From Macrostomum lignano (lineage: Eukaryota), in contig NIVC01004222.1 of NCBI GenBank assembly GCA_002269645.1, positions 1 to 54,222 on the forward strand: DNA of 54,222 nt. Direction: 5' to 3'. The position numbers and the translations under genes were made by a program. The notes beneath the pieces are model-generated. The model saw only the letters and a list, made by a program, of their open reading frames with translations, made no database searches and was not told the origin of the DNA. Shown here piece by piece: positions 25,034-52,695 of this stretch. Positions within the stretch are counted from its first letter, which is position 1; each line of letters begins with the position of its first letter.

Positions 25034-27248
25034 ATGACTCATTCTGTGAGCTTCGATCTGGAGGCTCCGGTCCGGAAACGCCTGCGAATGGAGGCGGCTG
25101 GAGAATTCGAACCCGGCAGTTCTCCCTTTCACTTGGAGCAGCTGCCAGAGGAGCTGCTCACGCAGATCCTGTCCGAGCTGGACCAGACCAGCCTCGGCCG
25201 GTGCGCTCAGCTGAGCAGGCGCTGGTGGCGGCTCGCGGCTGTGGCGCAAAATCCGCATTGATGGCGACGCCGTGGATGCTGGGCTGATGGAGCGGCTCAG
25301 AGACTGGCTGGGCGGCAGCGTGCGGGAGATCTCGGCCTGGGGGCTGACAGCCGAGAACCGGCTGCCACTGCTGTTGTCTGCATCCGCCAGCCTCACCTGC
25401 CTCAGCCTGCGGGAGGTGCATGGCGACGCTGCGGTGACGGAGGAGGTGCCCCGGCCTGCTGGAGCTGAGCATCACCGACTGCCAGAAGTCGTTGTCGGCC
25501 GCCTCGCTGAGCAGCCTGCTGTCCGGCTGCCCGCGCCTCTCGCTGCTGGAAATTCTCGGCAGTGCCACTGACGCGTTTGCTGACTGGCAGGACCGTTCGG
25601 TGCGCCAGCTGTTCGGTCAGTGCCGCTAGTTTTTCACTGGGCTAGTATGCAGGAACCGCCGTTCCAATCCAATACAGTCACGCTCCTGGCACCCCCGTGC
25701 ATGGGAATCTGCTTGAAGCCCCGGTGCTGCTTAGAAATGCATCAGAGCTGCTGAATTCCCCATCTCACAGCACGGGCCGCCCCACCTTTACTTTAAGGCA
25801 TTTGTCTAGAAAAGCCTGTTCTAAAGACAACTCGAAAGATAAGAAGAACGGATATCTACTGGACTTCTTTGCGCTTGCCACTCTTCTATACTAGTGCTTA
25901 CTCTAAATCCAATTCGATGGACTTGTGAAACCGCCCGGGACTCAACCCATACTGGATTTACTTTATCTTCTTAAGTTCAGACAGGCTTTCAAACAAATTT
26001 CCATAGAATTATTGAATAGCTTGACTGCCGGTGGTCCTTTATTCAATGCCCTCGCTGAACTCGCCACTCTCCAGAGTTGCCCCGCGTGCTGAGCATCGCG
26101 CCGAACCTGACGGAGCTGCGAGTGACAAGTTGCGGCAACACCTTCGACCTCGAGCCCGACCGGCACCCTGCGCCCGTGCCCGGCCTGAGGCACCTGAGCC
26201 TTGACTGCGAGGGGTCACGTGACGAGAATACGGAGATAGCATTGTGGCTGCTGCCCAGCCTGCCCTCACTTGAGAGTCTGCGTTTGGTGTCTTACCAAGC
26301 CTCAGAAAAGCACTTCCGCCAGATCCTCCGCTGCCTGCCTGCCGGCCTTGCGGACCTGAAGTTAAGATTCACGGAAATCGGTGCTCGTTCGGAGCTGGGC
26401 AGAGCGGTCCGCTGCCGCTAGGGCTTCAGCGGCTGCAGCTCACGGGGTCGTTCTTTGATGCGCCATGGAGCTTTCGGTTGTCTGGCGCTCTCAGCGGCTG
26501 TCCAGGTGAGTCCCGCTCACCTTGCCGCTCCTTTGGTAGATACCTGGATTGATGCTCAGACTGCTGCTCTCCCAGATGCTCAGACTGCTCCTCTCCCAGA
26601 TGCTCAGACTGCTGCTCTCCCAGATGCTCAGACTGCTCCTCTCCCAGATGCTCAGACTGCTCCTCTCCCAGATGCCCAGACTGCTGCTCTCCCAGATGCT
26701 CAGACTGCTGACTGCTGTCCCAGATGCTCAGACTGCTGCTCTCCAAGATGCTCAGACTGCTGACTGCTCTCCCAGATGCTCACACTGACAGCTATAAATT
26801 CCATTTAACTGCAGCGTTGACCCATGTTGAGCTGGAGGCGGGCATTGACGACCTGCTGCCGGCTCTGCTCTCCCGGCTGCCCCACCTGCGCTGCCTCCAC
26901 ATCCACAACTGCAGCCTCCTGACTCGCCAGGCCTGGGCGAATCTGCAAAGCCTCGCAGCCTGGCCACTCGATCTGATGGAGTTCCGGGCCCTCGGTTGCG
27001 CTGGCTCCAGCCTCACTGATGATGCGATGGCCGACCTGTGCGCCAGTCCGGTTGCCAGGGGACTGCGGCGGCTCCGCCTGTCCGACTGCAGCCAGTGGAC
27101 TGCCGCCGCCCTCGCCAGCATCGCCAGCGGCTGCCCGTGGCTCACTGAGCTCCAGCTGGAGGGCTTCAGGCGAGTCCCCCGCGATGAGCGCATCGAGGCG
27201 GCCTTCGAGCTGAGCATCGACTTGACTGCTTTCTGGCTGCAACCGTAG
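25034..27248 (+). pseudogene. F-box/LRR unit A (type I), disabled
   Basis: Exons 25034-25615, 26075-26505, 26815-27248. F-box LEQLPEELLTQILSELDQTSLGRCAQLSRRW followed by LRRs. Lesions: 11-nt deletion after the F-box, net -8 near 25445, 129-nt deletion near 25611, and +5 insertion near 26400. Confidence 0.85.
26550..26780. repeat. 24-bp minisatellite (CCCAGATGCTCAGACTGCTGCTCT) in intron 2 of unit A
   Basis: The same repeat occurs at 29555-29735 and 48105-49020. Confidence 0.9.
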
Positions 27249-27249
27249 C

Positions 27250-27600
27250 AACTCCCAGCTCTGCAACTGACTCCCTTCAGCTCTGCAACTGCCTCCCTTC
27301 AGCTCTGCAACTGCCTCCCTTCAGCTCTGCAACTGCCTCCCTTCAGCTCTGCAACTGCTCTGCAACTTCAGCTCTGCAACTGCCTCCCTTCAGCTCTGCA
27401 ACTGCCTCCCTTCAGCTCTGCAACTGCCTCCTTTCAGATCTGCAACTGCCTCCCTTCAGCTCTGCAACTGCCTCCCTTCAGCTCTGCAACTACCTCCCTT
27501 CAGCTCTGCAACTGCCTTCCTTCAGCTCTGCAACTGCCTCCCTTCAGCTCTGCAACTGCCTCCCTTCAGCTCTGCAAGTGCCTCCCTTCAGCTCTGCAAC
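27250..27600. repeat. 22-bp minisatellite (TCAGCTCTGCAACTGCCTCCCT) after the stop of unit A
   Basis: The same repeat follows units B (30210-30535) and F (49490-49745). Confidence 0.9.
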
Positions 27601-27997
27601 TTTTTCACAACTTGGACCAGCAAAATGTGTAAATTTGTTTTTTTTATCTAAAGAAGCTGCATTCCCCAATAAGGGACTTGTTTTCAAAAATGCGCACTGT
27701 TGTGCCCCATGAGCAGAGTGAGCAGTTTCAAAATAGTATTGCTGACGCAACCCCCTAATCTTATATTTACTTCAAGTAACATGTTAACCTGTTTACTTGT
27801 AAACCTGTTGTGGTGAGCCAACCACCAATTAGAAATAATGATAGGAAATCAATGCACTTTCTCGATGTGGCAGTATTTGATGCGTGCGCAGCGTTATTGC
27901 AGTTCTTGATCAATTTTTTTCATTTTTGTTGCTTCTTGACAACAGGAGGCGGTTGCTTCTGCCTGTTTCTTCAAATATTCTGTTTTCTTTGTTACAG

Positions 27998-30206
27998 CTG
28001 GAGCAGCTACCAGAGGAGCTGCTCACGCAGATCCTGTCCGAGCTGGACCAGACCAGCCTCGGCCGGTGCGCTCAGCTGAGCAGGCGCTGGCGGCGGCTCG
28101 CCACGCAGCCGCGGCTGTGGCGCAAAATCCGCATTGACGGCCGCACCGCAGATGCCGAGCTGATGGAGCGGCTCAGAGACTGGCTGGGCGGCAGCGTGCG
28201 GGAGATCTCAGCCTGGGGGCTGACAGCCGAGAACCGGCTGCCACTGCTGTTGTCTGCATCCGCCAGCCTCACCTGCCTCAGCCTGCGGGAGGTGCATGGC
28301 GACGCTGCGGTGACGGAGGAGGTGCCCCGGCCTGCTGGAGCTGAGCATCACCGACTGCCAGAAGTCGTTGTCGGCCGCCTCGCTGAGCAGCCTGCTGTCC
28401 GGCTGCCCGCGCCTCTCGCTGCTGGAAATTCTCGGCAGTGCCACTGACGCGTTTGCTGACTGGCAGGACCGTTCGGTGCGCCAGCTGTTCGTTGAGCTCA
28501 TCGGCCGCCTCACGGCGCTGCACCTGCCGGACATCGATGCTTCTGAGCTCCTTGCTGATCTGACAGAGTGTCCCCGGCTCTCCGTGTTGTCGGTGGGGCT
28601 GTCAGCCAGCCGCGGCTTCGGTCAGTGCCGCTAGTTTTTCACTGGGCTAGTATGCAGGAACCGCCGTTCCAATCCAATACAGTCACGCTCCTGGCACCCC
28701 CGTGCATGGGAATCTGCTTGAAGCCCCGGTGCTGCTTAGAAATGCATCAGAGCTGCTGAATTCCCCATCTCACAGCACGGGCCGCCCCACCTTTACTTTA
28801 AGGCATTTGTCTAGAAAAGCCTGTTCTAAAGACAACTCGAAAGATAAGAAGAACGGATATCTACTGGACTTCTTTGCGCTTGCCACTCTTCTATACTAGT
28901 GCTTACTCTAAATCCAATTCGATGGACTTGTGAAACCGCCCGGGACTCAACCCATACTGGATTTACTTTATCTTCTTAAGTTCAGACAGGCTTTCAAACA
29001 AATTTCCATAGAATTATTGAATAGCTTGACTGCCGGTGGTCCTTTATTCAATGCCCTCGCTGAACTCGCCACTCTCCAGAGTTGCCCCGCGTGCTGAGCA
29101 TCGCGCCGAACCTGACGGAGCTGCGAGTGACAAGTTGCGGCAACACCTTCGACCTCGAGCCCGACCGGCACCCTGCGCCCGTGCCCGGCCTGAGGCACCT
29201 GAGCCTTGACTGCGAGGGGTCACGTGACGAGAATACGGAGATAGCATTGTGGCTGCTGCCCAGCCTGCCCTCACTTGAGAGTCTGCGTTTGGTGTCTTAC
29301 CAAGCCTCAGAAAAGCACTTCCGCCAGATCCTCCGCTGCCTGCCTGCCGGCCTTGCGGACCTGAAGTTAAGATTCACGGAAATCGGTGCTCGTTCGGAGC
29401 TGGGCAGAGCGGTCCGCTGCCGCTAGGGCTTCAGCGGCTGCAGCTCACGGGGTCGTTCTTTGATGCGCCATGGAGCTTTCGGTTGTCTGGCGCTCTCAGC
29501 GGCTGTCCAGGTGAGTCCCGCTCACCTTGCCGCTCCTTTGGTAGATACCTGGATTGATGCTCAGACTGCTGCTCTCCCAGATGCTCAGACTGCTCCTCTC
29601 CCAGATGCCCAGACTGCTGCTCTCCCAGATGCTCAGACTGCTGACTGCTGTCCCAGATGCTCAGACTGCTGACTGCTGTCCCAGATGCTCAGACTGCTGC
29701 TCTCCAAGATGCTCAGACTGACTGCTCTCCCAGATGCTCACACTGACAGCTATAAATTCCATTTAACTGCAGCGTTGACCCATGTTGAGCTGGAGGCGGG
29801 CATTGACGACCTGCTGCCGGCTCTGCTCTCCCGGCTGTCCCACCTGCGCTGCCTCCACATCCACAACTGCAGCCTCCTGACTCGCCAGGCCTGGGCGAAT
29901 CTGCAAAGCCTCGCAGCCTGGCCACTCGATCTGATGGAGTTCCGGGCCCTCGGTTGCGCTGGCTCCAGCCTCACTGATGATGCGATGGCCGACCTGTGCG
30001 CCAGTCCGGTTGCCAGGGGACTGCGGCGGCTCCGCCTGTCCGACTGCAGCCAGTGGACTGCCGCCGCCCTCGCCAGCATCGCCAGCAGCTGTCTGTGGCT
30101 CACTGAGCTCCAGCTGGAGGGCTTCAGGCGAGTCCCCCGCGATGAGCGCATCGAGGCGGCCTTCGAGCTGAGCATCGACTTGACTGCTTTCTGGCTGCAA
30201 CCGTAG
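27998..30206 (+). pseudogene. F-box/LRR unit B (chimera: type II 5' end, type I body), disabled
   Basis: Exons 27998-28620, 29080-29510, 29773-30206. The 5' flank and F-box are identical to unit C; the body is nearly identical to unit A, including the -8 and +5 frameshifts. Confidence 0.85.
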
Positions 30207-30930
30207 CAACTCCCAGCTCTGCAACTGCCTCCCTTCAGCTCTGCAACTGCCTCCCTTCAGCTCTGCAACTGCCTCCCTTCAGCTCTGCAACTGCCTCCCT
30301 TCAGCTCTGCAACTGCCTCCCTTCAGCTCTGCAACTGCCTCCTTTCAGATCTGCAACTGCCTCCCTTCAGCTCTGCAACTGCCTCCCTTCAGCTCTGCAA
30401 CTGCCTTCCTTCAGCTCTGCAACTGCCTTCCTTCAGCTCTGCAACTGCCTCCCTTCAGCTCTGCAACTGCCTCCCTTCAGCTCTGCAACTGCCTCCCTTC
30501 AGCTCTGCAAGTGCCTCCCTTCAGCTCTGCAACTTTTTCACAACTTGGACCAGCAAAATGTGTAAATTTGTTTTTTTTATCTAAAGAAGCTGCATTCCCC
30601 AATAAGGGACTTGTTTTCAAAAATGCGCACTGTTGTGCCCCATGAGCAGAGTGAGCAGTTTCAAAATAGTATTGCTGACGCAACCCCCTAATCTTATATT
30701 TACTTCAAGTAACATGTTAACCTGTTTACTTGTAAACCTGTTGTGGTGAGCCAACCACCAATTAGAAATAATGATAGGAAATCAATGCACTTTCTCGATG
30801 TGGCAGTATTTGATGCGTGCGCAGCGTTATTGCAGTTCTTGATCAATTTTTTTCATTTTTGTTGCTTCTTGACAACAGGAGGCGGTTGCTTCTGCCTGTT
30901 TCTTCAAATATTCTGTTTTCTTTGTTACAG

Positions 30931-32748
30931 CTGGAGCAGCTACCAGAGGAGCTGCTCACGCAGATCCTGTCCGAGCTGGACCAGACCAGCCTCGGCCGGT
31001 GCGCTCAGCTGAGCAGGCGCTGGCGGCGGCTCGCCACGCAGCCGCGGCTGTGGCGCAAAATCCGCATTGACGGCCGCACCGCAGATGCCGAGCTGATGGA
31101 GCGGCTCAGAGACTGGCTGGGCGGCAGCGTGCGGGAGATCTCGGCCTGCGGGCTGACAGCCGAGCAGCGGCTGCCACTGCTTGTGGCCGCATCCGCCAGC
31201 CTCACCTGCCTCAGCCTGCGGGACATGGATCAACCACCCGCCCAGCTGGCCGTGACGGAGGCGGGCCGCAGCTGCCCCGGCCTGCTGGAGCTGCGCCTCG
31301 TTGATTGTCGAAACGGCCTGTCTGACGAGTCTCTAAGCTGCCTGCTGACCGGCTGCCCGCGCCTCTCGCTGCTGCAGATGGACAGCCGAACAGCCGCCTG
31401 CGATGCGGTCGGGTGGAGCTGCAGCCAGCAGCTGTTGGCTGAGCAGGTCTGCCGCCTCGCCAGCCTGTCAGTGAGAAGCTGGAGCAGCGCTGCTCCGATG
31501 CTCCGAGACCTGCCCGAGTGTCCGCTGCTCACCAGCTTCGCCACCTGCGGCGCTGAGCTGTCCAGTGAGTCTTTCAGGGGTTTCTGAGACCTGTTTGACG
31601 GACTTTACCTGAACTTCCATCGCTCCTAAAGATTTGCTGACTCCGCTGTCCCGGATGCCGGAGCTGACCGACCTGCGGCTTCGGTGCCGGAACTGGTGCC
31701 GCTCAGCAAGCGACCTGCAGCTGCTAGGCGGCGCGGCCCGGCTTCGCTGCCTCCGCATCGACAGCCGCTTTGTGGACGCCGCCTCGGTGCCTCCGCTGCT
31801 GGCCCGCATGCCGCAGCTGCGAAGCTTCCGGCTGAAGTCGTCAGCCAGGGTCTTCGTGTTGGACTGCCATGCCTGCGCGATCCTGCGAGCCCTGCCGGCG
31901 GGTCTGACAGACCTGGGCCTGAGCTTTGAGCACGCGGATTGGAGCTGCCGAGCCGGCGTCGGCCCACCTGCTGTGCTGCCGCCGAACCTGCGGCGGCTGC
32001 GGCTGGAGGGACTCCCGCCACGTGCGGATCAGCTGCGCCTGATGGAGCTGCTGGCCAGCTGCCCAGGTGAGCGGGTCTGTTGCTGGTGGCTGCTAAGGTG
32101 AGCGGGTCTGTTGCTGGTGGCTGCTAAGGTGAGCGGGTCTGTTGCTGGTGGCTGCTAAGGTGAGCGGGTCTGTTGCTGGTGGCTGCTAAGGTGAGCGGGT
32201 CTGTTGCTGGTGGCTGCTAAGGTGAGCGGGTCTGTTGCTGGTGTGGGCTGGTGGCTGCTCATGCATGTTAGGAACCAGTCATAACCTGCTCATATCTGCA
32301 GGCCTGACTTTTTTTAACCCTGGACTTCTGCACTGACGACCTGCTGCCGGCTCTGCTCTCCCGGCTGCCCCCCCTGCGCTGTCTCCACCTCACCGACTGC
32401 AGCCGCCTGACCCGCCAGGCCTGGGCGAATCTGCGACGTCTGCAGAGCCTCGGAGCTGCCACCCCCGACCTGCACGAGCTGCGTGCTCACAGGTGCAGCA
32501 GGCGCAGCCTCACTGATGAGGCGGTGGCCGACCTGTGCGCCAGTCCGGTTGCCAGGGGCCTGCGGCGCCTCAGCCTGTCATTTGACTGCAGCCAGCTGAC
32601 CGCCGCCTCGCTGGCCAGCATCGCCAGCGGCTGCCCGCTGCTGACCCGCCTGGTCCTGGCCGGGAGCGGCTTCGGGCAGGCCGACCTGCAGGCTTTCCGG
32701 CTGTCTTTTGAGCACTGCGTGACGGTGACGAATCACGGGCCCCTGTGA
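30931..32748 (+). CDS. F-box/LRR-repeat protein, unit C (type II)
   Basis: Exons 30931-31564, 31632-32066, 32302-32748 with GT-AG phase-1 introns. Open except for one extra T in a T7 run at about 32310 (possible sequencing error). No in-frame upstream ATG; it begins at a phase-0 acceptor TTACAG|CTG. Confidence 0.75.
32066..32242. repeat. 31-bp minisatellite carrying repeated donor motif AG|GTGAGC (unit C intron 2)
   Basis: About 6 copies of GGTGAGCGGGTCTGTTGCTGGTGGCTGCTAA starting at the true donor. Confidence 0.9.
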
Positions 32749-33035: not shown

Positions 33036-33444
33036 ACTCGCAATCAAAATTTCATTATTCGTCACATTTTTTATGTAAACTGTCATTGCGGACTGCCTTT
33101 CAAGTCTCTGTTTTTTGTTGTTGAACTTTTTATCAATAAAATAAACTTGCTCAGAGTGTCCTATGAGAACAACAAAGATCCTGCATGTTTTTTTTTTATT
33201 CTCAGAGCAGGCGATGCTCGAAATTGTGTTTGATTTCCTGCTTTGAGCTCGCAGAGACTGGAGAGCAGCTTCACCATTTCAGCCGCACCATGGCGGAGGC
33301 CTGCGCGAGTCAAGAGCGTCCGGCGCCGAAGTCTCTGCGGCTGGAGGCGGCTGAGGCGGCCGGTGAAGACGAGCGGGAGACCTAGGAGTCCGCGCTGAGT
33401 GTGAGCTGCGACCTGATGTGGGACCTGGGCTGAGTGTGAGCTGA

Positions 33445-34618
33445 GTGAAGCTTCCAGTCCCATCCTGAAGCTCCAGTCCCATCCTGAAGCTTCCAGTCCC
33501 ATCCTGAAGCTTCCAGTCCCATTATGAAGCTTCCAGTCCCATCCTGAAGCTTCCAGTCCCATCCTGAAGCTCCAGTCCCATCCTGAAGCTTCCAGTCCCA
33601 TCCTGAAGCTCCAGTCCCATCCTGAAGCTTCCAGTCCCATATTGAAATTTCAGTCCCATCCTGAAGCTTCCAGTCCCATCCTGAAGCTTCCAGTCCCATC
33701 TTGAAGCTTCCAGTCCCATATTGAAATTCCAGTCCCATATTGAAATTCCAGTCCCATCCTGAAGCTCCAGTCCCATCCTGAAGCTTCCAGTCCCATCCTG
33801 AAGCTCCAGTCCCATCCTGAAGCTTCCAGTCCTATATTGAAATTTCAGTCCCATCCTGAAGCTTCCAGTCCCATCTTGAAGCTTCCAATCCCAACCTGAA
33901 GCTCCAGCACCCATATTGAAATTCCAGTCCCATCCTGAAGCTCCAGTCCCATCCTGAAGCTCCAGTCCCATCCTGAAGCTCCAGTCCCATCCTGAAGCTC
34001 CAGTCCCATCCTGAAGCTCCAGTCCCATCCTGAAGCTCCAGTCCCATCCTGAAGCTCCAGTCCCATCCTGAAGCTCCAGTCCCATCCTGAAGCTCCAGTC
34101 CCATCCTGAAGCTCCAGCACCCATATTGAAATTCCAGTCCCATCCTGAAGCTTCCAGTCCCATCCTGAAGCTCCAGTCCCATCCTGAAGCTTCCAGTCCC
34201 ATCCTGAAGCTCCAGTCCCATCCTGAAGCTTCCAGTCCCATCCTGAAGCTCCAGTCCCATCCTGAAGCTTCCAGTCCCATCCTGAAGCTCCAGTCCCATC
34301 CTGAAGCTTCCAGTCCTATATTGAAATTTCAGTCCCATCCTGAAGCTTCCAGTCCCATCTTGAAGCTTCCAATCCCAACCTGAAGCTCCAGCACCCATAT
34401 TGAAATTCCAGTCCCATCCTGAAGCTCCAGTCCCATCCTGAAGCTCCAGTCCCATCCTGAAGCTCCAGTCCCATCCTGAAGCTCCAGTCCCATCCTGAAG
34501 CTCCAGTCCCATCCTGAAGCTCCAGTCCCATCCTGAAGCTCCAGTCCCATCCTGAAGCTCCAGTCCCATCCTGAAGCTCCAGTCCCATCCTGAAGCTCCA
34601 GTCCCATCCTGAAGCCGA
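33445..34618. repeat. 19/20-bp minisatellite (CTCCAGTCCCATCCTGAAG)
   Basis: About 1.17-kb tandem array with an internally duplicated block of variant units. Confidence 0.95.
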
Positions 34619-35064
34619 AGCTGTTGGTCTCCTCATTCACAAGAACTGCGCGAGCTGCTGCGTCGGCTGCCCCGCCTGTCCGAGCTGACGATGAACCAGA
34701 AATTTTCGGACAGCCTGGCCGCTGTGCTGGCAGACGGCTGCGGCGGCCGCCTCCACTCCCGTGCCGGTTCCTGGTGCATGAAGCTGAGCGGCCCTGCTCG
34801 ACCGTAGCCCGCTGCTCTGGCGGCTACGGCTGACCTCCTGCAGTGCGCTGGACGCCGCGGGCTGCCGCCTGGTTGTCTCCCGCCTGTCGCAGGGCCTTCA
34901 GGAGCTGGAGCTGAAGGATGCGCTGTGTGACGGCCTGGACAGAGCGCTGCCGCTGAGTCTGCGCCTGCTGCAGCTGGCCGGCCACCCCTGCAGCAAAACT
35001 ACAAAACTGCAGCTGACCGGCCTGAGTGCCTGCTCGGGTGAGCTGCCTGAGCTCGGGAGGCGAT

Positions 35065-35345
35065 TGGGATTGGGGATGAGAGCTTGGGGAGATGAGAGCT
35101 TGGGGAGATGAGATGTTGGAGAGATGAGAGGTTGGGGAGATGAGATGTTTTGGAGATGAGAGAGGTTGGGGAGATGAGAGGTGGGGGAGATAAGAGGTTG
35201 GGAAGATGAGGTTGGGGAGATGAGAGGTTGGGGAGATGAGAAGTTGGGAAGATGAGAAGTTGGGGAAATGAGAGGTTGGAGGAGATGAGAGGTTGGGGTA
35301 GATGAGAGGTTGGAGAGATGGGAGAGCTTGGGGAGATGAGACAAA
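35065..35345. repeat. 16-bp purine-rich minisatellite in unit D intron
   Basis: Tandem GAGAGGTTGGGGAGAT. Confidence 0.9.
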
Positions 35346-35897
35346 TAGGTCCTTTCAAGGCACTATCAGTGTGTGTGTCGAAGCCGCCCATTTTGCAACC
35401 CTCGCCCGCAGCCCAGCTGACCGTCCTGGCTTTCGGAGGCTGCAACGACGAGCTGCTGCCGGCTCTGCTCTCCCGGCTGCCCCGCCTTCGCCGCCTCCAG
35501 CTCTACGACTGCGGCCGCCTGACCCGCCAGGCCTGGGCGAACCTGCGAGACCTTCGGAGCCTCGGAGCTGCCATGCCCGACCCGCACGAGTTCTGGGCCA
35601 TCTGCTGCAGGAAGTCCGTGCTCACGGAGAGAGGCGGTGGCCGACCTGTGCGCCAGTCCGGTCGCCAGGGGCCTGCGGCGGCTCAGCCTGTCAAAATGCG
35701 ACCGGCTGACCGCCGCCTCTGTCGCCAGCATCGCCAGAGGCTGCCCGTGGCTGCTCAACCTGGATCTCTGCGGCTTCGACTGCATCGCCAGAGACGAGCG
35801 CCTCGAGGCGGCCTTCGGGCAGCGGGTGAACCTCAGCGGCTTGTGGAGGTCGGAGACGGCAGCTCTGGCGGAGGACGGCTGTGAAGTGGAAACTGGC

Positions 35898-36802: not shown

Positions 36803-36992
36803 GCAAAAATATTTTCTATACGCAGAAATCTCTATCAAACAAAAAATCTTGGCTTGTAGAAGAATCTTTATGCTAAATATACTCAGTGCCTTACTGACTT
36901 ATTTCTTCACGTTAGAAATTTTTTATCTGCACCAAATCGTTGGGTTGATTTAGCGACATCTTGACTTTTATTTCTAAGGAGCACTGCTGACT

Positions 36993-41192: not shown

Positions 41193-43926
41193 TCTCTACA
41201 TATAAAAATCAAAACTCTGTCTGTCTGTCTGTGGACAAATTACTTCGCTATGGACTCTCAAACCGCTCAACCAAATGACACCAAACTTTACACCCACCCT
41301 AAACTACGGAGAATGTCTTAGGCTACCTTTTAATTTCCTAGACTCAAGTCTTCCTACCTAAAAGTACAAAAAACTGCTCAAAATGCGCGATTTTTTCACT
41401 TAATCCTCCATAGCGCCGCTCCACTTCTACCAATTCTCTTTAAATTTGACACAGACAATCTTCAACTATTTTGACACAATCGTGTAAAATTTCAAGTCTC
41501 AAAGTTGATCCCGAACGGTGCTGTGCACTTTTAAAGTTTGGCTGTTTTTTTCAGCGTGGTAGCCACCCCAACCTCCGCCCGCCTGCCCTCTTTCCCGATC
41601 TGGCTGGGCCCAGATGTGTAAAAGGGTTTCAAAATTGACTAAATTTCAGCTGCCATAAGTTTGCTCCACGTAAAGCGATTGACTTCAAACTTGACACAAT
41701 TCTTCATTGACTCATTCTCTGTCTACATGTAAAGTTTCAACTCTGTAACTCAACCGAAAAAGAAACTAAGCATGTGAAATTTGTCTGCTTTTCTGTTGTT
41801 TGTGCCACTCACTCACTCATTCCCCCAGAGCCAGACGAAGGGTCAGGCGATAGGACTGAATGTACATAGCAAATGTACAGTGTTTTGGAATAACTTTATT
41901 TATAGCCTTCCTTCTCTGCACCCCGAGAGTGGAGAGGCTACGTTTAGCCATAACAGTTTAGTGAGAAATTCCAACCAATGCCCTCTGTATTGGCAAACTC
42001 AGCAGTTTAACAGTGGATGGTAATTGGCAAATCGAGGGAATCCAGCATGGTTTGTAAAAGCGAAAGATTTATGAAAAGGCGATGCGATGCAATGCAATAC
42101 AACCCTACTAAATTAGGCACACCATGGAAATTTTAGGTTTCTTTTAAAGGTACTGTGTAAATATTAAATGGCCTTCTAAGAAATGCGTATTTCCTTGGTT
42201 GTTAGACTGATGCAGACTGCAGTGGAGCTGAAGATACACAAATTCCTTTCAGGGCTGCAAATTGGCAAGAAAGATGACGTGATCAAAGCATGAGAACAAC
42301 CATAAGAGTACTACGTCCCACAAACTGGCTTTTCAAGCAGGGATGGGCAGACTTTTACCTCAAAGGCCAGATAAAGAATCCAGCTCATGGCTGAGGGGCA
42401 GATGAGAGTGGAAAGAAGAAGGAATAGACGATTCGAAGAGAGGAGAAGCGAAAGAGGGGATAAAAGAAAAGATAAAAGATAATAGGAGAGATGAGGGGGT
42501 GAGGACGATGAGAGAGAGGGGGAAAATAGGGGAGAGAGGAAAAGCGAGAGGAGAGAGTAGAGATGAGAGAGCAGAGAGCTGCAGATGAGATGAGAGAGCA
42601 GAGAGGAGAGCAGAGAGTAAAGGGAAGAGAGAAGAGATAAAGATACATCTCTACATCTCTAAGGTTGTAGAGATGAGAGAGGTGGAAGGAGAGATGAGAA
42701 ATGAGAGATGAGAGATAAAGGAGAGAGGAGAGTGGAGTGAGAGAAGAGAGGGAGAGAGAGTATAGAAAAGGGAAGAAAAGAGAAAAAAAGAAAGGAGAAA
42801 GGAAAGTGAGGAGTCAAAAGAGGGGTAAGAAAAGAGTACAGAGGAGAGAGGTGAGAGAACATATAAGACAGAGATGCCAGATTAAAGAGGGGGGTGAGAG
42901 AGCAGAGACGAGAGTGAACAGATGAAAGATGGGAGAGTAGAGAGAACAGAGGAGAGATAAGAGAGAAGAGATTACAGAGACGAGAGGAGAGAGGAGAGAC
43001 AAATGTAGAGAAGTGAGTGAGGAGAGAGGAGAGGGGAGAGAGTAGAGAGAGGAGGAGAGAGGGAGAGGAAAGAGAATGGAGAGGGGAGAGAGTAGAGAGA
43101 GGAGGAGAGATAAGAGAGAAGAGGGGGAGAGAGGAGAGAGGAGAGGAGAGAGAAATGAGGAGAGATAAGAGAGAAAAGATAAAAGAAGAGAAAGGAAAGA
43201 TGAGAGAGCAAAGACGAGAGAGAAAAGAGGTGAGGAAAGAGACGAGAGAAGAGGGGAGAGATGAGAGAGTTAAGAGAAGAGAGAAAAGATAAAAGAAGAG
43301 AAAGGAAAGATGAGAGAGCAAAGACGAGAGAATAGAGGTGAGGGAAGTGACGAGAGAAGAGGGGAGAGATGAGAGAGTAGAGGAGAGAGTTAAGAGAAGA
43401 GAGAAAAGAATAGAAAGGAGAAGGAAGAAAAGAGAGAATAGGGGGTGAGAGGAGAGAGGAGAGGGGGAGAGAGGAGAGAGGAGAGGAGAGAGAAAGCAAA
43501 AAAGTAGAGAGGAGAGAGGAGAGGAGAGAGAAAAGAAGAGACAAGAGATGAGATAAGAGAGATGAGGAAAGATACGAGAGAAGAGGGGAGAGAGGAGAGA
43601 GGAGAGACGAGGGACGAGAGAGATGAGAGGAAACAAAGAGACGATAGAAATTTTAAAGGATCCAAGGGACGTAGGGAGAGTCAGGGAGAGACCAGAGTTT
43701 AGCAATATATGTTTTAGAGTCAGACAGACATTGCCTGACATTCTGCGCAGTACCCCAGCCAACAATGTCTCAACCCCTAATTTTACACGAATGTGCTCCA
43801 TTTTATGTCTACTTCTATCCTACTATTAATTTGTTTGTGTATGGCCTTAGATTTCAGAATACATGCAAAAGTAGTTCCGGGGATTGGAATTCCCCGGGTT
43901 CAAAATCCGCGGGTTTCAACAGCTTG
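41193..43926 (+). mobile_element. Putative non-autonomous Helitron-like element with internal AG-rich expansion
   Basis: 5' A|TCTCTACATATAAAAATC followed by (CTGT)n. Near the 3' end is a hairpin CCGGGGA..TCCCCGG, then CCGCGGGTTTCAACAGCTTG|T. No coding remnant. Confidence 0.4.
42400..43690. repeat. AG-rich low-complexity / degenerate microsatellite
   Basis: Almost exclusively purine (GAGAG, GGAGA) repeats. Confidence 0.95.
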
Positions 43927-44539
43927 TGTAACTAATAAAGAGAAAAATCCCATGGATAAGTTAGTGTGAAAGTCATTTGCTCTTCTTGATTAGATCTCTA
44001 AGAAAGATTGAATGCTATGAGATATTTTTAAAAACAAATATTAGTGACCTATCTCAGCTCCCTAAGCAGGTACACAATTCATTTTTACACTTTTTCAACA
44101 TAGTCCCCTCCAATTTTGATGCAATTTTTGCAAGGATCTATCAACTTTCTAAAAGCCAAGACAAAGGCTTCTGCTAGGAGACTTCTCATAACCTATTGTG
44201 ACTCATTTTTTGACTGAGTTTCTAGCAAGCTAGACTAGATGCCTGATAACTCTTTTTACTTTAGGAGAGGCAGAAGTCTGTAGAAGCCAGATCTGGCAAG
44301 TATGGCAGATAAGAAAGTACATGGGTTAAATATCTCTCTAGAAAACTCCTCATGTTTTCTATTGAATAAATAGGTTCGTTATCCCAATGAAAAATCATTG
44401 CTGCTTAGTCAGGCCATCAGGCCAAGATTATTATAGAGGATCAAGTGGACAGTGTTAATAAAATGGCTGAATTTAGTTGCTAATTCCTCAACTATCACAC
44501 AATGGACCAATTTCACTATAGTCTAAATAACAGCACAGA

Positions 44540-45022: not shown

Positions 45023-45442
45023 TTGTCTATCTATTTTGGAGGCTTAAGTTCACATCCCCTTTAGACCATAGTAAGGATGCTGCTAAAATGATTTTTTGGC
45101 AAAGTGAAGTTTCGGCCTAGTGAAGTTTCGGCCTTATGAAAGAGCGTGCTAGTAATTTCTGCAATGTAAAGTTTCGGCCTAGTGAAGTTTCGGCCTAGTG
45201 AAAAAGAGTGTTTTTCGGCGAAGTGAAATTTCGGTCTAATGAAAGCGCCCCAGGGCCCCGGGGCGCAGCTCCCCTAGCTGCGCCAGTCCGGTTGCTATAG
45301 GCCTGCGGCGGCCGAGTGCGGCCGAGTGACCGCCGCCTCCCTGGCCAGCATCGCCGACGGCTGCCTGCGGTTTGCTGAACTGACGCTATACCACTTCAAG
45401 GCGGCCTTCGAGCTGAGGAGCATCGACTTGTCCGCGTGCTGA
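44540..45442 (+). pseudogene. Relic of F-box/LRR exon 3 (unit E), interrupted by a 30-bp repeat and a MITE
   Basis: Remnants LPTL.ARLPNLRCL (about 44545) and CASPVAIGLRR..VTAASLASIADGC..FKAAFELRSIDLSAC* (about 45278-45442) match exon 3 of the other units. Confidence 0.75.
44696..45266. mobile_element. MITE with subterminal GCCGAAA/TTCACT repeats, containing (TATC)n
   Basis: Inverted TTTCACTAGGCCGAAATTTCACTTTGCCGAAA vs TTTCGGCGAAGTGAAATTTCGGTCTAATGAAA. AGCT on both flanks (44692-44695, 45267-45270). (TATC)n at about 44935-45022. Confidence 0.7.
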
Positions 45443-45489
45443 CTGTGGCCTTGGCTGCTCGCTTTTTAATGAACTTCGGTGTGCAGCGA

Positions 45490-46100: not shown

Positions 46101-46498
46101 GATTACAAGCCAACCATTTCGTTGCGTGACTCCAAAGCAACCAGGCGGCAGGTAGTCAGAGCAGTCGTCTCCACCATGAAGGCCCGCAAGCCTGGGAGTT
46201 GTGCATGTTGATGCGCAGTGAAGCGAGCACCAGGGGAAATAACAGTTATATACAGTATAGTTTTCATTTTCAGTCATTTGTTTTTTGTCTCTCTACCTCC
46301 AGTGTTCGGAGCTCTGAATGAAATCACTGAATTGCAGTTTTTGCAGGTATTAAATATATCGCTGTGCGCTGTGGATATAATTCTAGCATATCCCACCCTT
46401 GCAAATGAATTGGTAATTTTGCATTATAAAATGCAGAGCACTTTGTAGAGATAAATGCTTCAATGACTGACTGCCTTTGCCACTTCCCAGCTTTACAG

Positions 46499-49489
46499 AT
46501 GGCTCATTCTGTGACCTTCGATCTGGAGGCTCCGGTCCGGAAACGCCTGCAAATGGAGGCGGCTGGAGAATTCGAACCCGGCAGCTCTCCGTTTCACCTG
46601 GAGCAGCTGCCAGAAGAGCTGCTCACGCAGATCCTGTCCGAGCTGGACCAGACCAGCCTCGGCCGGTGCGCTCAGCTGAGCAGGCGGTGGTGGCAGCTCG
46701 CCACACAGCCGCAGCTGTGGCGCAAAATCCACATTGACGGCCGCACCGCAGATGCCGAGCTGATGGAGCGGCTCAGAGACTGGCTGGGCAACAGCGTGCA
46801 GGAGATCTCGGCCTCCTTCCTCCCTCGGCTGCCGCTGCTTCTGGTCGCATCCGCCAGCCTCACCTGTCTCAGCCTGTGGCACGCTAAAGGAGACACTGCA
46901 GTGACCGTGGCTGCCTGCTTCTGCCGCAACCTGCGGGAGCTTCGCCTTTGCGGCTGCAACAGCGCGCTGTCGGCCGCCTCACTGAGCTGCCTGCTGTCCG
47001 ACTGCCCGCGCCTCTCGCTGCTGGAAACTGACAGCGATGAAGCGTTCGATGAATGGCGGCACTTTCAGGTGCGCCAGCCGTTCGTTGAGCTCGTCGGCCG
47101 CCTCTCGGCACTGTACCTGCCGTTCATCGAGGCTTTGGAGCTCCTTGATAATCTGGCAGAGTGTCCCCGGCTCTCCGTGTTGTCGATGGGCTGTCTGCCA
47201 GCCGCGGCGGTCACTGCGGTATGTTTTCACTGGGCTTTTTGTATGCAGGGACCGCCGTTCCAATCCAATGCAGGCACCTGCTTGAAGCCATGAGCTTCTT
47301 AAAAATGCATCAGCGCTGCTGAATTCCCCATCTCAGCTCCCCAGCTAAAGGCTTTGCAGTCTAGAAAAATCTGTTCTTAAGACAACTTAACTTCTTTGCG
47401 CTTGCCACTCTTCTGCATTAGTGCTTATTCTGAATCCTAGTCGATAAATTTTTGAAACCACCCAGGACTCAACTCAACCCATACTGGCTGTACTTTATCT
47501 TCTTAAGTTCAGACATGCTTTAAACAAATTTCCATAGAATTATTGAATTGCTTGACGGTCGGCGGTTCTTCATTGAATGCCCTCGCTGAACTCGCCGCCC
47601 TCCAGAGTTGCCCCGCGTGCTGAGCATCGCGCCGAACCTGACAGAGCTGCGAGTGGAAATTTGCGGCGGGAACTTCGATCTCAGGACCGACCAGCCGCCT
47701 GCGCCCGTTCCCAGGCTGAAACACCTGAGCCTTGACTGGAACTGGTCATATGGCGAGAATACTAAGATAGCATTGTGGCTGCTGCCCAGCCTGCCCTCGC
47801 TTGAGAGCCTCGATTTAGTGTTTTCCGAAGTCTCAGATGAGCAATTCCGCCAGATCCTCCGCTGCCTGACTGCCGGCCTTGCGGACCTTCGAGTGGAGAT
47901 TCACGGAAGTCGGTGCTCGTTCGGAGCTGAGCTGGGCGGTCCGCTGCCGCCGGGGCTTCAGCAGCTGCAGCTCACAGGATCATTATTTGATGATCCATGG
48001 AGTTTACAGTTGTCTGACACTCTGAGTGGCTGTCCAGGTGAGTCCCGCTCACCCTGCCGCTCACCCTGCCGCTCACCCTGCGCTCACCCTACATACTCGG
48101 ATTGATGCTCAGACTGCTGCTCTCCCAGATGCTCAGACTGCTGCTCTCCCAGATGCTCAGACTGCTGCTCTCCCAGATGGTCAGACTGCTGCTCTCCCAG
48201 ATGCTCAGACTGCTGCTCTCCCAGATGCTCAGACTGCTGCTCTCCAGATGCTCAGACTGCTGCTCTCCCAGATGGTCAGACTGCTGCTCTCCCAGATGCT
48301 CAGACTGCTGCTCTCCCAGATGCTCAGACTGCTGCTCTCCCAGATGCTCAGACTGCTGCTCTCCCAGATGGTCAGACTGCTGCTCTCCCAGATGCTCAGA
48401 CTGCTGCTCTCCCAGATGCTCAGACTGCTGCTCTCCCAGATGCTCAGACTGCTGCTCTCCCAGATGCTCAGACTGCTGCTCTCCCAGATGCTCAGACTGC
48501 TGCTCTCCCAGATGCTCAGACTGCTGCTCTCCCAGATGCTCAGACTGCTGCTCTACCAGATGCTCAGACTGCTCTCCCAGATGCTCAGACTGCTGCTCTC
48601 CCAGATGCTCAGACTGCTGCTCTCCCAGATGCTCAGACTGCTGCTCTCCCAGATGCTCAGACTGCTGCTCTCCCAGATGCTCAGACTGCTGCTCTCCCAG
48701 ATGCTCAGACTGCTGCTCTCCCAGATGCTCAGACTGCTGCTCTCCCAGATGCTCAGACTGCTGCTCTCCCAGATGCTCAGACTGCTGCTCTCCCAGATGC
48801 TCAGACTGCTGCTCTCCCAGATGCTCAGACTGCTGCTCTCCCAGATGCTCAGACTGCTGCTCTCCCAGATGCTCAGACTGCTGCTCTACCAGATGCTCAG
48901 ACTGCTGCTCTCCCAGATGCTCAGACTGCTGCTCTCCCAGATGCTCAGACTGCTGCTCTCCCAGATGCTCAGACTGCTGCTCTCCAGATGCTCAGACTGC
49001 TGTTCTCCCAGATGCTCAGACTTGCTCAGCTGCTATAAATTCCATTCAACTGCAGAGTTGACCTATGTTGAGCTGGAGGCGGGCACCGACGACCTGCTGG
49101 CGGCTCTGCTCTCCCGGCTGCCGCGCCTGCGCTGCCTCTGCATCAACAACTGCAGCCTCCTGACCCGCCAGGCCTGGGCGAATCTGCGAAGCCTCGCAGC
49201 CTGGCCACTCGATCTGATGGAGTTCCGGGCCCTCGATTGCACTGGCTTCAGCCTCACTGATGAGGCGGTGGCCGACCTGTGCGTCAGTCCGGTCGCCAGA
49301 GGCCTGCGGTGGCTCCACCTGTCCGACTGCAGCCAGCTGACTGCCGTCGCCCTCGCCAGCATCGCCAGCGGCTGTCCGTGGCTCACTGAGCTCCAGCTGG
49401 AGGGCTTCAGGCGAGTCCCCCGCGATGAGGGCATCGAGGCGGCCTTTGAGCTGAGCATCGACTTGACTGCTTGCTGGCTGCAACCGTAG
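46499..49489 (+). CDS. F-box/LRR-repeat protein, unit F (type I), ~528 aa
   Basis: Exons 46499-47218, 47606-48037, 49056-49489. The gene is fully open if one G is restored in the GGG run at about 47188 (unit B has GGGG there). Acceptor TTTACAG|ATG; donors GTATGT and GTGAGT. Confidence 0.8.
48105..49020. repeat. Expanded 24-bp minisatellite in unit F intron 2
   Basis: Roughly 38 copies of CCCAGATGCTCAGACTGCTGCTCT. Confidence 0.95.
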
Positions 49490-49809
49490 CAACTTTCATC
49501 TCTGCAACTGCCTCCCCTCAGCTCTGCAACTGCCTCCCTTCAGCTCTGCAACTGCCTCCCTTCAGCTCTGCAACTGCCTCCCTTCAGCTCTGCAACTGTC
49601 TCCCTTCGGCTCTGCAACTGTCTCCCTTCAGCTGTGCAGCCGTCTCCCTTCAGCTCTGCAACTGCCTCCCTTCAGCTCTGCAACTGCCTCCCTTCAGCTG
49701 CAACTGCCTCCCTTCATCTCTGCATCTGACTCCCTTCAGCTCTTCAACTGACTCACTTCGGCTTTGCATCTCTCATTCAGAGAAGAAGGAAAATGTTCAA
49801 CTCAGTGGG

Positions 49810-50141
49810 TTTTTTTTATTAGAGGCAGGGTCAGGCGCACTTTAAGCGACATACAGGTAGGCACACAATCGGCGAGAGGCATTACTGCCCATTCCGCCGA
49901 CTCCCCTGAGCAGGCATACAAGCGCGCGGATACGTACGCAGGCACACACTCACACAGGAGTGTACAGCGGCCCTAACTTTATTTTATCGTTACACATGTA
50001 CACTTTACTGCGTCTCGGGGGTTGGCTCTCAAGGCCGTTAATTGCACGAGCAGAGCCAAGCCGAGATTGCAATTCAGCCCCAAATTAATGTGACTGCACT
50101 TGGAATCGAGCCTGGGTCGCTGGCATACCAGAGCCTGCGCT
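49810..50141 (-). mobile_element. tRNA-derived SINE family 1, second copy
   Basis: Colinear and highly similar to 11236-11595, from the A-tail to the B-box region; the extreme 5' end is diverged. Confidence 0.85.
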
Positions 50142-50494
50142 AGACCGCCCAGAGAAACTAAATTCCTAGACAAGAGACTAGTCCCTCAAAAATCTGCTGT
50201 TGCGCCTTTGAGCAGTTTTCAAGTAACACTCCTACACGTATTACTGACTCATTCCCTAACATCTGATGATTACTTCAAGTACCATGTATCCTGTTATCCT
50301 GTTAGCCTGTAAAGCCAGCGGACAGCCAGGTTAAAAATAAATGCATTTTCTGGATTAGCCAGTGTTGGTGCCTGCACCGTATGCTGGGCTGTGTTGCTGC
50401 AGTTTTGAACCATTGTTCAATTTTGTTGCTTCTTGACAACAGGAGGCAGTCGCTTCTGTCTGTTTCTTCAAATATTCTGTTTTCTTTCTTACAG

Positions 50495-52695
50495 CTGGAG
50501 CAACTGCCAGAGGAGCTGCTCACGCAGATCCTGTCCGAGCTGGACCAGACCAGCCTCGGCCGGTGCGCTCAGCTGAGCAGGCGCTGGCGGCGGCTCGCCA
50601 CGCAGCCGCGACTGTGGTGCAAAATCCACATTGAAGGGTGCACCGCAGATGCCGAGCTGATGGAGCGGCTCAGAGACTGGCTGGGCGGCAGCGTGCGGGA
50701 GATCTCGGCCTGCGGGCTGACAGCCGAGCAGCGGCTGCCACTGCTGTTGGCCGCATCCGCCAGCCTCACCTGCCTGAGCCTGCGGGAGGTTCACGGCGAC
50801 GCTGAGGTGACGGAGGCGGGCCGCAGCTGCCCCGGCCTGCTGGAGCTGCGCCTCACCGACTGCCAGAAGTCGCTGTCGGCCGCCTCGCTGAGCAGCCTCC
50901 TTTCCGGCTGCCCGCGCCTCTCGCTGCTGGAATTCAGCGACAAGGGGGTCCTCAGCGACTGGTGGGACCCGGACTTTCGCTGGCTGCTCTTTGATCTGAT
51001 TGGCCGCCTCAGCAGCCTCAGCATATCTCTTGATGAAGCTGCGGAACTCATCAGCGAGCTGCCTGAATGCCCGCTGCTGCTCAGCCTGTCTGTTTACCAG
51101 CTCAGCCTGCCTGGTGAGTCCCCAGCCTGCCGATCCTGAGGGTCTCAGCTCGCGAGCCCCGCACCTCTCCGCCCATCTGCACCCAGAGCTGCAGACGGTG
51201 TTGAGCAGCGCCCGGAACCTGACCGACCTGCATGTTGAGACGCTCAGCAGCCAGGATGAAGCCGCCATGCTGAACTTCCCGCCCTTCCCCAGCCTGCGGC
51301 GGCTCAGCATCGGCGGCGGCCCGCCTGGCGGTCGAGTCCGAGTCCCCGAGATGTTGCTGGAGCTGCTGCCCAGCCTCCCGGCACTCAGCAGCTTCAGCAC
51401 CGTCTCGTCCGGCTTACTCGGCGAGGACTTCCGCCGTATCGTCCGCTGCCTGCCCGGCGACCTGGCGGACCTTCGGCTGCACTTTCTGGAGCAGCTGGCA
51501 GTGGATGAGGCCGAGGTGAGCGGCCCGCTGCCTTTGAGCCTGCGGCGTCTGCAGCTCACTGGGTCCGCCTTTGACACCGGCTGGGTCCTGCGGCAGACAG
51601 ATCCGCTGTCAGGCTGCTCAGGTGAGTCAAGAGGATGCTCATTCTTTGTGCAGGTGTCACTCACGTTGCTCACACTGCTCACATTCTCCTCTCTGCAGGC
51701 CTGACCCACCTCACTCTCTGCAGGCCTGACCCACCTCACTCTCTGCAGGCCTGACATACCTCACTCTCTGCAGACCTGACCCACCCCACTCTGCAGACAT
51801 GACCCACCTCACCCCCTCTGCAAGCCTGACCTACCTCACTCCCCGCTGCAAGCCTGACCCACTCACTCTCTGCAGGCCTGACCCACCTCACTCCCCCTCT
51901 GCAGGCCTGACCCACCTCACTCCCCGCTGCAAGCCTGACCCACCTCACTCCCCCTCTGCAAGCCTGACCCACCTCACTCCCCGCTGCAAGCCTGACCCAC
52001 TCACTCTGCAGGCCTGACCCACCTCACTCCCCCTCTGCAGGCCTGACCCACCTCACTCTCTGCAGGCCTGACCCACCTCACTCCCCACTGCAGGCCTGAC
52101 CCACCTCGCTCCCCACTGCAGGCCTGACCCACCTCACTCCCCTCTGCAGGCCTGACCCACCTCACTCCCCACTGCAGGCCTGACCCACCTCACTCCTTTC
52201 TGCAGCACTGACCCACCTCTCTCCTTTCTGCAGGCCTGACCCACCTCGCTCTCCAAGCGTGCAGCGATGACCACCTGCTGCCGGCTCTGCTCTCCGGCTG
52301 CCCCGCCTGCGCTGCCTTCGCTTCTTCGACTGCAGCCGCCTGACCCGCCAGGCCTGGGCGAACCTCCGAGACCTGCAGGGCCTCGCCGCCTCCTCATCCG
52401 ACTGCACGAGCTCCAGGCTCACCAGTGCGCCTATTCCAGCCTTACCGATGACGCGGTGGCCGACCTGTGCGCCAGTCCGGTTGCCAGGCGACTTCGGCGG
52501 CTGCTTTTGTCGTCTGAGCTCAGCAGTCAGCTGACGGCCGCCTCGCTGGCCAGCATCGCCAGCGGCTGCCCGCTGCTGACCCGCCTGAACCTCCGGTGGC
52601 GCTCCTGCGCTGACGAAGCTGAAGACCTTCGGGCTGCCTTCGAGCAGAGCGTTGAGCTGAACGGTGGCTGGTCTGAGGACGAGTTTCCCTGGTGA
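50495..52695 (+). CDS. F-box/LRR-repeat protein, unit G (type II)
   Basis: Exons 50495-51113, 51187-51621, 52234-52695 with phase-1 GT-AG introns. Exon 3 needs two single-C restorations (about 52293 and 52402). It starts at acceptor TTACAG|CTG; an unspliced in-frame ATG also exists at 50381. Confidence 0.75.
51692..52250 (+). repeat. ~25-28-bp minisatellite made of the duplicated intron/exon junction CTGCAG|GCCTGACCCACCTCA
   Basis: About 20 tandem copies of the unit G exon-3 acceptor plus the first codons. Confidence 0.9.

Follow-up and report, generated by a model that had tools for sequence, protein, structure and literature searches.

The DNA considered here is a 54,222-nucleotide (nt) stretch of the Macrostomum lignano genome (assembly GCA_002269645.1, contig NIVC01004222.1, positions 1 to 54,222; referred to below as the window), which carries a tandem cluster of F-box genes with leucine-rich repeats (LRRs). 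Five copies, designated A, B, C, F and G, were recognized in the one assembly and one haplotype analysed, where they represent about four lineages, and each is built of three exons with GT/AG introns and has its own stop codon (Table 1). They are accompanied by an LRR gene that has no F-box (D), by the first exon of a second D (D') and by a decayed fragment (E). The F-box part of the five copies is nearly the same DNA throughout and is found attached to strongly diverged LRR bodies, with one of the copies, B, being a chimera of its two neighbours.

All close protein matches of the cluster were M. lignano F-box proteins, and the window is eukaryotic. Copy F, which matches the UniProt model P0001 at 99-100%, contains in residues 34-79 a segment scoring 51.3 bits with Pfam PF12937 (F-box-like, cutoff 24.3) and 30.8 bits with PF00646 (cutoff 20.5), and the Pfam LRR matches in a family protein barely exceed the cutoff. 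The AlphaFold (AF2) model (predicted local distance difference test, pLDDT, 74.5; predicted template modelling score, pTM, 0.73) shows alternating strand and helix arranged in about 16 strand-helix repeats. Its top Foldseek matches, with a probability of 1.00, were FBXL2, TIR1, COI1, D3 and FBXL17, the best ones including the complexes FBXL2-SKP1, TIR1-ASK1 and COI1-ASK1 in addition to FBXL17, and the best sequence match in the PDB was also FBXL2 (E=9e-11). Judging from sequence and predicted fold, the genes encode FBXL-type adaptors with an N-terminal F-box followed by about 16 LRRs. In this class of adaptors the F-box docks on SKP1 within the Skp1-Cullin-F-box (SCF) ubiquitin ligase, and must fit SKP1, while the LRR solenoid would bind the substrates. 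By family homology, the F-box of the cluster proteins would equally dock on SKP1, and the choice of substrate would be set by their variable middle, the putative binding part. M. lignano possesses a SKP1 gene (PMC9740662). The family is small: in a search of 1.84 billion proteins, 11 representatives had E<=1e-10, those with a visible source being M. lignano models; a further homologue search with a 146-residue F-box query returned a single match, and the family is apparently restricted to Macrostomum.

Not all copies are intact. In tblastn comparisons exon 1 of copy A is split over three frames and exon 2 over two, with an 11-nt deletion right behind the 71-nt block described below and another of about 130 nt at the end of exon 1, and copy B is frameshifted at about 28316-28322 and in exon 2. 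Copies A and B have in common an 8-nt deletion in exon 1 and the frameshift in exon 2, so that the body they share must have been dead before its duplication. Provided that the assembly is correct, both copies are pseudogenes. In copy C, which is 92-97% identical to the UniProt model P0003, exons 1 and 2 are open, and exon 3 has a run of seven T (32309-32315) where P0003 implies six. Copy F has GGG at 47188-47190 where P0001 implies GGGG, which places the exon-1 donor out of phase, and exon 3 of copy G contains a 1-nt homopolymer frameshift near 52293-52297 that conflicts with the UniProt models. The single-base frameshifts of C, F and G may correspond to assembly errors, or to real alleles or homeologs.

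Table 1. Genes, shared segments and recombination landmarks of the F-box/LRR cluster, in window coordinates.
Feature	Position	Strand	Description
Copy A	25034-27248	+	exons 25034-25615, 26075-26505, 26815-27248; type I; pseudogene
Copy B	27998-30206	+	exons 27998-28620, 29080-29510, 29773-30206; C-type flank and F-box, A-type body; pseudogene
Copy C	30931-32748	+	exons 30931-31564, 31632-32066, 32302-32748; type II; intron 1 of 67 nt
Gene D	33290-35851	+	F-box-less LRR gene; last exon 35372-35851, a frameshifted exon-3 homologue (tblastn with P0008, P0017 and exon 3)
Fragment E	45311-45451	+	decayed piece of an exon-3 homologue (tblastn, 48% over 56 amino acids)
Copy F	46499-49489	+	exons 46499-47218, 47606-48037, 49056-49489; type I
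Copy G	50495-52695	+	exons 50495-51113, 51187-51621, 52234-52695; type II; intron 1 of 73 nt
D' first exon	54140-54214	+	after G, at the window end; 92% amino acid identity to D exon 1
71-nt identical block	25151-25221 (A), 28016-28086 (B), 30949-31019 (C), 46616-46686 (F), 50513-50583 (G)	+	encodes ELLTQILSELDQTSLGRCAQLSR, F-box helices
30-nt identical block	25284-25313 (A), 28160-28189 (B), 31093-31122 (C), 46760-46789 (F), 50657-50686 (G)	+	exact in the five copies
Type II acceptors	27992-27997 (B), 30925-30930 (C), 50489-50494 (G)	+	TTACAG/CTGGAGCAG; fit the [T/C]TNCAG motif
Non-coding 100 nt before the type II acceptor	27898-27997 (B), 30831-30930 (C), 50395-50494 (G)	+	ends in TTACAG, ahead of CTGGAGCAG
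Crossover interval in B	28159-28215	+	last C-specific site 28158, first A-specific site 28216; includes the 30-nt block 28160-28189
Tandem duplication unit, about 2.9 kb	about 25341-28215 and 28216-31148	+	two copies; A-type body, spacer, type II flank, F-box
A/B-like tract in G exon 1	50746-50936	+	counterparts 25373-25555 (A) and 28249-28431 (B)

The preliminary description of this DNA reported that two segments of exon 1, of 71 and 30 nt, are exactly the same in the five copies, and both were confirmed in all five places, with no matches to either block being found in shuffled sequence. Copy-specific differences border the 71-nt block in every copy, and even the pseudogene A keeps it intact. 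When compared with external DNA, represented by three paralogue loci (L001, L002 and L003), the 30-nt block turned out to be cluster-specific, as its amino acids differ in all three. The 5' ends of the genes are of two types. In type I (A and F) the gene has its own ATG and a leader of 33 amino acids joined directly to the F-box, and in type II (B, C and G) a polypyrimidine tract and the sequence TTACAG stand immediately ahead of CTGGAGCAG; the flanks of the two types display zero similarity up to the exact junction base. Within type II, the non-coding flank preceding the acceptor is 92% identical between C and G (89/97), the identity dropping farther upstream to about 78-80% in a patchy alignment, whereas exon 2 of the same two copies is only about 55% identical (dS 0.70, dN 0.69, for synonymous and non-synonymous divergence, respectively). 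The early impression that C and G have barely alignable second exons next to near-identical acceptor regions was thus correct.

Copy B is a direct example of an F-box joined to a different LRR body. Its 5' end is that of C (300/300 identical positions in the flank and 160/160 in exon 1), and its body is that of A (100% identity in the remainder of exon 1 and throughout intron 1 and exon 2; exon 3, 99%). At the sites that discriminate between A and C, B agrees with C in 11 of 11 cases through exon-1 column 160 (position 28158) and thereafter, from column 218 (28216), with A in all 393. This clean switch of parent means that B is a single-crossover chimera in which the flank and F-box of C were joined to the body of A. 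The event was an unequal crossover accompanied by a tandem duplication of about 2.9 kb, not a conversion; self-blastn aligned 25612-28424 with 28617-31374 at 94.5%, with the gaps lying within minisatellites and the segments being 97-100% identical. It also follows that the five copies are not independent witnesses, since B repeats C at its 5' end and A in its body.

Copy G had been regarded as a patchwork with a C-like flank, an A/B-like middle of exon 1, an exon 2 closer to A/F and an exon 3 closer to C. Most of this could be sustained: columns 0-250 of exon 1 are C-like, columns 250-450 are A/B-like (33 sites with G=B vs 6 with G=C, p=1.4e-5), and exon 3 is again C-like (56 vs 31 sites, p=0.01). 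The A/B-like tract is 92% identical between A/B and G (169/183), the value falling to about 52% past column 450 and to about 57% in exon 2. The part concerning exon 2 holds for the protein only, which is closer to F (44% vs 35% identity), the nucleotide sites being divided 87 vs 76, which is not significant. The body of A and B is also heterogeneous, because in columns 17-408 of exon 1 B agrees with G at 48 sites and with F at 7, and outside these columns it is F-like (318 vs 54 sites; permutation p<=0.005). The maximum chi-square test with permutation gave p<=0.005 for four triplets, and a Sawyer-type run test was significant for the pairs A-G, C-G and A-F (Bonferroni p 0.003-0.012), with p=0.001 for the A/B-like tract in G. 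The breakpoints in exon 1 are staggered, falling at about columns 160-218, 250-290 and 450, and do not mark a single module junction.

Synonymous divergence changes markedly along the genes. Between C and G, dS amounts to 0.083 in the F-box, 0.29 in mid exon 1, 1.2 at the end of exon 1, 0.70 in exon 2 and 0.32 in exon 3. The corresponding values are 0.135, 0.31, 1.5, 1.16 and 0.54 for F-G, 0.083, 0.15, 1.49, 1.10 and 0.49 for B-G, and 0.086, 0.32, 0.063, 0.20 and 0.075 for B-F. Uniform synonymous divergence and congruent segment trees, the two patterns expected if the preliminary description were mistaken about exchange, were not seen: for C-G, F-G and B-G dS rises from 0.08-0.14 in the F-box to 0.7-1.5 in the last part of exon 1 and in exon 2, and the trees conflict, with significant breakpoints. 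In addition, where C, F and G agree in the encoded amino acid, 6 of 54 codons differ in the F-box vs 56 of 146 elsewhere (p=1.3e-4), and the F-box remains the less divergent when compared with exon 3 (20/66, p=0.014). The introns of the divergent middle cannot be aligned and its dS is saturated, which indicates that this region is old, rather than fast-evolving or hypermutated.

Two further observations concern these comparisons. At the end of exon 1, F (47030-47218) and B (28431-28620) are separated by 24.5 non-synonymous and 2.5 synonymous differences (dN/dS of about 3.7), a ratio that may reflect diversifying selection, though one of the partners is now a pseudogene. Quartet counts of 57:3:4 in exon 2 and 47:2:4 in exon 3 were considered as proof that C and G are sisters and rejected, as they are inflated by long-branch chance matches; they support only the closeness of A/B and F.

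Across the whole family, mean pairwise protein identity is 0.54-0.64 in the F-box, 0.52-0.75 in the LRR block of exon 3 and 0.2-0.38 in the middle. The idea of a constant-region/variable-region design put forward at first had therefore to be given up, as exon 3 is conserved to the same degree as the F-box, the layout being constant-variable-constant, and no sign of a purposeful or somatic design was found.

The paralogues outside the cluster show how far the 71-nt block reaches. In L003, which lies on a different contig, the block is present at 71/71 and the identity with B, C and G extends over 79 nt, followed by a sharp loss of similarity; at the protein level exon 1 of this locus is about 38% identical, and the alignment of the DNA with the window copies is confined to 136 nt. 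L002 retains 67 of the 71 positions, with all four differences being non-synonymous, and in L001 the block is 80% identical and shows five synonymous differences. An excess of same-codon usage in the block, relative to exon 3 as control, was detected for F-L003 (23:1 vs 43:24, p=0.0027) and for L003-L002 (20:0 vs 53:18, p=0.0097), and was absent in L001. Codon bias is strong in this family, 64-78% of the amino-acid-conserved codons of exon 3 being identical even between distant paralogues, so that the excess identity of the block is real but smaller than it appears. The peptide ELLTQILSELDQTSLGRCAQLSR recurs exactly in five further UniProt models from diverged subfamilies, and the models P0008 and P0014 contain a +1-frame translation of the same block DNA. 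Two other features were noted at these loci. Downstream of the paralogue gene of L002, at 12797-12850, there is an orphan partial block (about positions 26-71) with two small insertions and an acceptor-like TTGTAG ahead of it. In L003, 7 kb upstream of the P0014 gene, positions 1678-2839 hold a second family member (64% amino acid identity to F in exon 2 and 90% in exon 3), which indicates that the family is clustered at other loci as well.

The order of the genes provides information on how the cluster was assembled. Exon 1 of D reads MAEACASQERPAPKSLRLEAAEAAG, is followed by a GT donor and resembles the type I leader, and a self-alignment matched 33192-33370 with 54042-54222 at 91.8%. The presence of D after C and of D' after G indicates a block duplication of a unit formed by a type I gene, a type II gene and D, with B originating afterwards within the first of the two units. 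Independent support for the gene order comes from the composition of P0017, a run-on UniProt model that strings together an A/B/F-type 3' part, a C-type F-box and D. Dating the A/B-F and the C-G pairs by a single block duplication was considered and rejected, as the coding divergence of C-G is 3-4 times larger.

The explanation favoured for these observations, held with good confidence, is that of a birth-and-death tandem cluster in which non-allelic recombination initiated within the conserved exon of the F-box keeps the F-box near-identical and leaves the middle diverged. In the proposed pathway, the three-gene unit (type I, type II and the F-box-less D) would first have been duplicated as a block, with birth and death of copies following. 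Purifying selection would conserve the SKP1-binding helices of the F-box, and the first 250 nt or so of the F-box exon, together with about 100 nt of flank in C and G, would be homogenized by unequal crossing-over and interlocus gene conversion, with purifying selection and the strong codon bias adding to the identity. Exchanges would begin in the F-box stretch, because it is the sole long run of homology between otherwise saturated paralogues, and would be resolved at varying points of exon 1. The expected outcome would be conversion tracts and chimeric genes carrying the same F-box on different LRR bodies. The chimera B, the tract common to A/B and G, the dS gradient and the incongruent segments are all directly visible in the window. 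Conversion, rather than repeated crossover, would be the putative homogenizer of the F-box. Overall, the process is of a known kind and corresponds to ordinary multigene-family evolution by birth and death and concerted evolution, with no new mechanism. The view that exchange at the F-box re-joins one F-box to different LRR bodies, as initially suggested, thus stands as regards the non-uniform dS, the incongruent segments and the example of B. It has to be qualified in that the copies are not independent, A and B are dead, the breakpoints are staggered and, in at least one case, sequence was exchanged by unequal crossover and not by conversion.

Several points weigh against the recombination account. 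With a single haplotype and assembly, non-reciprocal transfer is indistinguishable from repeated crossover followed by loss, and the history of four lineages is not fully resolvable. M. lignano is a hidden polyploid for which ambiguous assemblies have been described (PMC10468722), and collapse or polishing in a polyploid could inflate the 100% identities between A and B and between B and C. The frameshifts of C, F and G fall in homopolymers, making pseudogene calls beyond A and B unsafe. Moreover, the coding divergence between C and G is 3-4 times that between A/B and F although both pairs belong to the same duplicated block. Finally, the 71-nt block is exact in L003, on another contig and in a gene that is otherwise saturated, for which local tandem exchange is insufficient. 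This implies either that homogenization reaches dispersed members, through ectopic conversion, or that there is constraint at the nucleotide level.

The second of these options would treat the core of 71-79 nt as a DNA or RNA element, such as a small-RNA target, a cis-regulatory site or a recombination signal, that is conserved as such and not by conversion. It would account for the L003 core (identical to B, C and G over 79 nt despite the low identity of the exon-1 protein), for the lack of synonymous changes among the four differences of L002, for the same-codon excess in F-L003 and L003-L002, and for the intact block of the decayed copy A. Yet L001 has five synonymous differences and no excess over the exon-3 control, L002 tolerates four nucleotide changes and its orphan copy bears indels, the block has no Rfam match and folds as RNA in an ordinary way (z=-0.97), and short ectopic conversion tracts would also produce sharp-edged identity inside a conserved core. 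An element conserved on its own account is hence regarded as unlikely. Distinctly unlikely, too, is the more specific proposal that the core owes its identity across dispersed, saturated paralogues (the cluster, L003 and nearly L002) to a function as family-wide small-RNA target or recombination-promoting signal. On this view a recombination signal would turn the F-box exon into a site dedicated to the exchange of LRR bodies, and a common small-RNA target would co-regulate the whole family.

The identities between copies could also have been created or exaggerated by collapsed or mis-joined paralogues, or by short-read polishing in a polyploid, repeat-rich genome. The ambiguity of M. lignano assemblies, the complete identity of A/B and B/C over hundreds of bases and the single-base homopolymer indels that separate the window from the UniProt models all agree with this possibility, which is nonetheless quite improbable: copy-specific differences flank every block, F and G, at a distance of 20 kb, have surroundings of their own, L003 is on a different contig, and independent models tell the same story (P0008 and P0014 through the +1-frame block, P0013 through an A/B body matched at 96-100%, and P0017 through its string of genes). 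An account without any exchange, combining protein-level purifying selection and codon bias in the F-box with fast LRR evolution after recent duplication, seems very improbable. It draws on the exact peptide ELLTQILSELDQTSLGRCAQLSR in five other UniProt models of diverged subfamilies and on the same-codon frequency of 64-78% at conserved exon-3 positions, but selection on the protein cannot yield the parental switch of B (11/11, then 393/393). Neither does it explain that dS between B and G leaps from 0.15 to 1.49 inside exon 1, that a non-coding flank is 92% identical or that the nearest neighbours conflict by segment, and the saturated middle with its unalignable introns is old and not fast-evolving. 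Barely credible is a programmed diversity system, in which somatic or germline cassette assembly, comparable to lamprey variable lymphocyte receptors (VLRs) or to antigenic variation, would use the F-box as constant part. The constant/variable layout that invites this comparison is superficial, the other feature in its favour being the minisatellites at the splice sites of the variable exon. Such systems are expected to consist of an incomplete gene plus silent cassettes, whereas every copy here is complete, with three exons, splice sites and a stop codon; two of the copies are decayed, D and E are decayed genes rather than ordered cassettes, exon 3 is constant too, and the levels of divergence imply rare events over evolutionary time. 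A limited scan of the neighbouring open reading frames detected no recombinase or deaminase domain.

Apart from its part in recombination, the 5' end of the type II genes raises the possibility of trans-splicing. The spliced leader of M. lignano ends in ...TTGCATG and its acceptors follow the motif [T/C]TNCAG (PMC8629364), and the ATG of the leader would be in frame, directly ahead of LEQLPEELL. A search upstream of B, C and G for a leader exon, in which the leader peptides of A/F and the exon-1 peptide of D were used with permissive thresholds, gave no match, and G also has a genomic in-frame ATG upstream, at 50381. The spacers (749 nt from A to B, 724 nt from B to C and 1005 nt from F to G), partly made of minisatellite, match the operon criterion of PMC8629364. 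The start codon of the type II genes may thus be donated by the spliced leader.

The locus is dense in minisatellites, some of which repeat splice sites. In intron 2 of C (within 32058-32243) a 31-nt unit present six times repeats the exon-2 donor AAG/GTGAGC, and in intron 2 of G (within 51686-52251) a 28-nt unit present 21 times repeats the exon-3 acceptor and first codons, CTGCAG/GCCTGACCCACCTC. Intron 2 of the other copies holds a 24-nt minisatellite (A, 26551-26787, x9.5; B, 29556-29745, x7.5; F, 48104-49022, x38.5), and a 22-nt one is found just past their stop codons (A, 27256-27601; B, 30214-30534; F, 49495-49768). Additional arrays have units of 19 nt (x60, 33446-34615), 20 nt (x45, 35894-36803), 21 nt (x34, 36993-37713) and 46 nt (x23, 52815-53875). 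A purine-rich, low-complexity tract made of degenerate GAGAGAG and 110-nt units occupies 42400-43650, the GC skew being +0.59 over 42001-44000. Just upstream of A, a pair of repeats (22842-23165 and 23917-24242) is 97% identical, and a dispersed repeat at 11236-11574 is 87% identical to 49810-50142, in the F-G spacer. The remaining gene of note, on the minus strand at 204-3670, is an unrelated neighbour with an ELM2 domain (3215-3670) and a Myb/SANT domain (204-593), resembling co-repressors of the CoREST/MIER type. No tRNA-like genes were found in the window.

The cluster offers a clean and datable case of a conserved adaptor module serving as homology anchor in the reshuffling of the variable parts of a multigene family, with the parental switch of B being perfect and its breakpoint located to within 57 nt. 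In addition, an expansion of FBXL type that is apparently restricted to Macrostomum is documented, in a species that serves as a model in stem-cell and reproduction research. For annotation the cluster constitutes a warning, as gene trees of this family will differ by exon and several models are pseudogenes or run-on fusions.

As to known systems, the cluster proteins share with the FBXL-class receptors (FBXL2/FBXL20, SKP2 and FBXL17, and the plant TIR1/COI1) the N-terminal F-box followed by an LRR solenoid, but differ from the characterized members in that identity is only about 18-33% and in belonging to a small, apparently Macrostomum-only family. Plant nucleotide-binding LRR (NLR) resistance-gene clusters are known for birth-and-death evolution with chimeric paralogues. 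They resemble the present cluster in their tandem LRR genes, mosaics formed by crossover and conversion, hypervariable LRRs and many pseudogenes; unlike plant NLRs, the cluster proteins would be E3 adaptors, and they are not known to be linked to immunity. In the primate tandem paralogues Fbxo6 and Fbxo44, interlocus gene conversion across the F-box has been described, with positive selection of F-box proteins confined to the substrate-binding domains (PMC3984280). There too, a homogenized tract covers the F-box-coding part of neighbouring genes. In contrast to that pair, the M. lignano cluster displays several events with staggered ends, one of them an unequal crossover that produced a dead chimera, and its core block is also present in a paralogue on another contig. 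The F-box expansions of nematodes and plants, in which a stable F-box accompanies a fast-evolving substrate-binding domain (Thomas 2006, as cited in PMC3984280), share with this cluster the conserved F-box, the variable putative substrate-binding part, the tandem clusters, the pseudogenes and a dN/dS locally above 1. Unlike them, the C-terminal LRR exon of the M. lignano genes is conserved too and the middle is saturated at synonymous sites, and age and mosaicism, rather than positive selection alone, would explain most of the contrast between F-box and middle.

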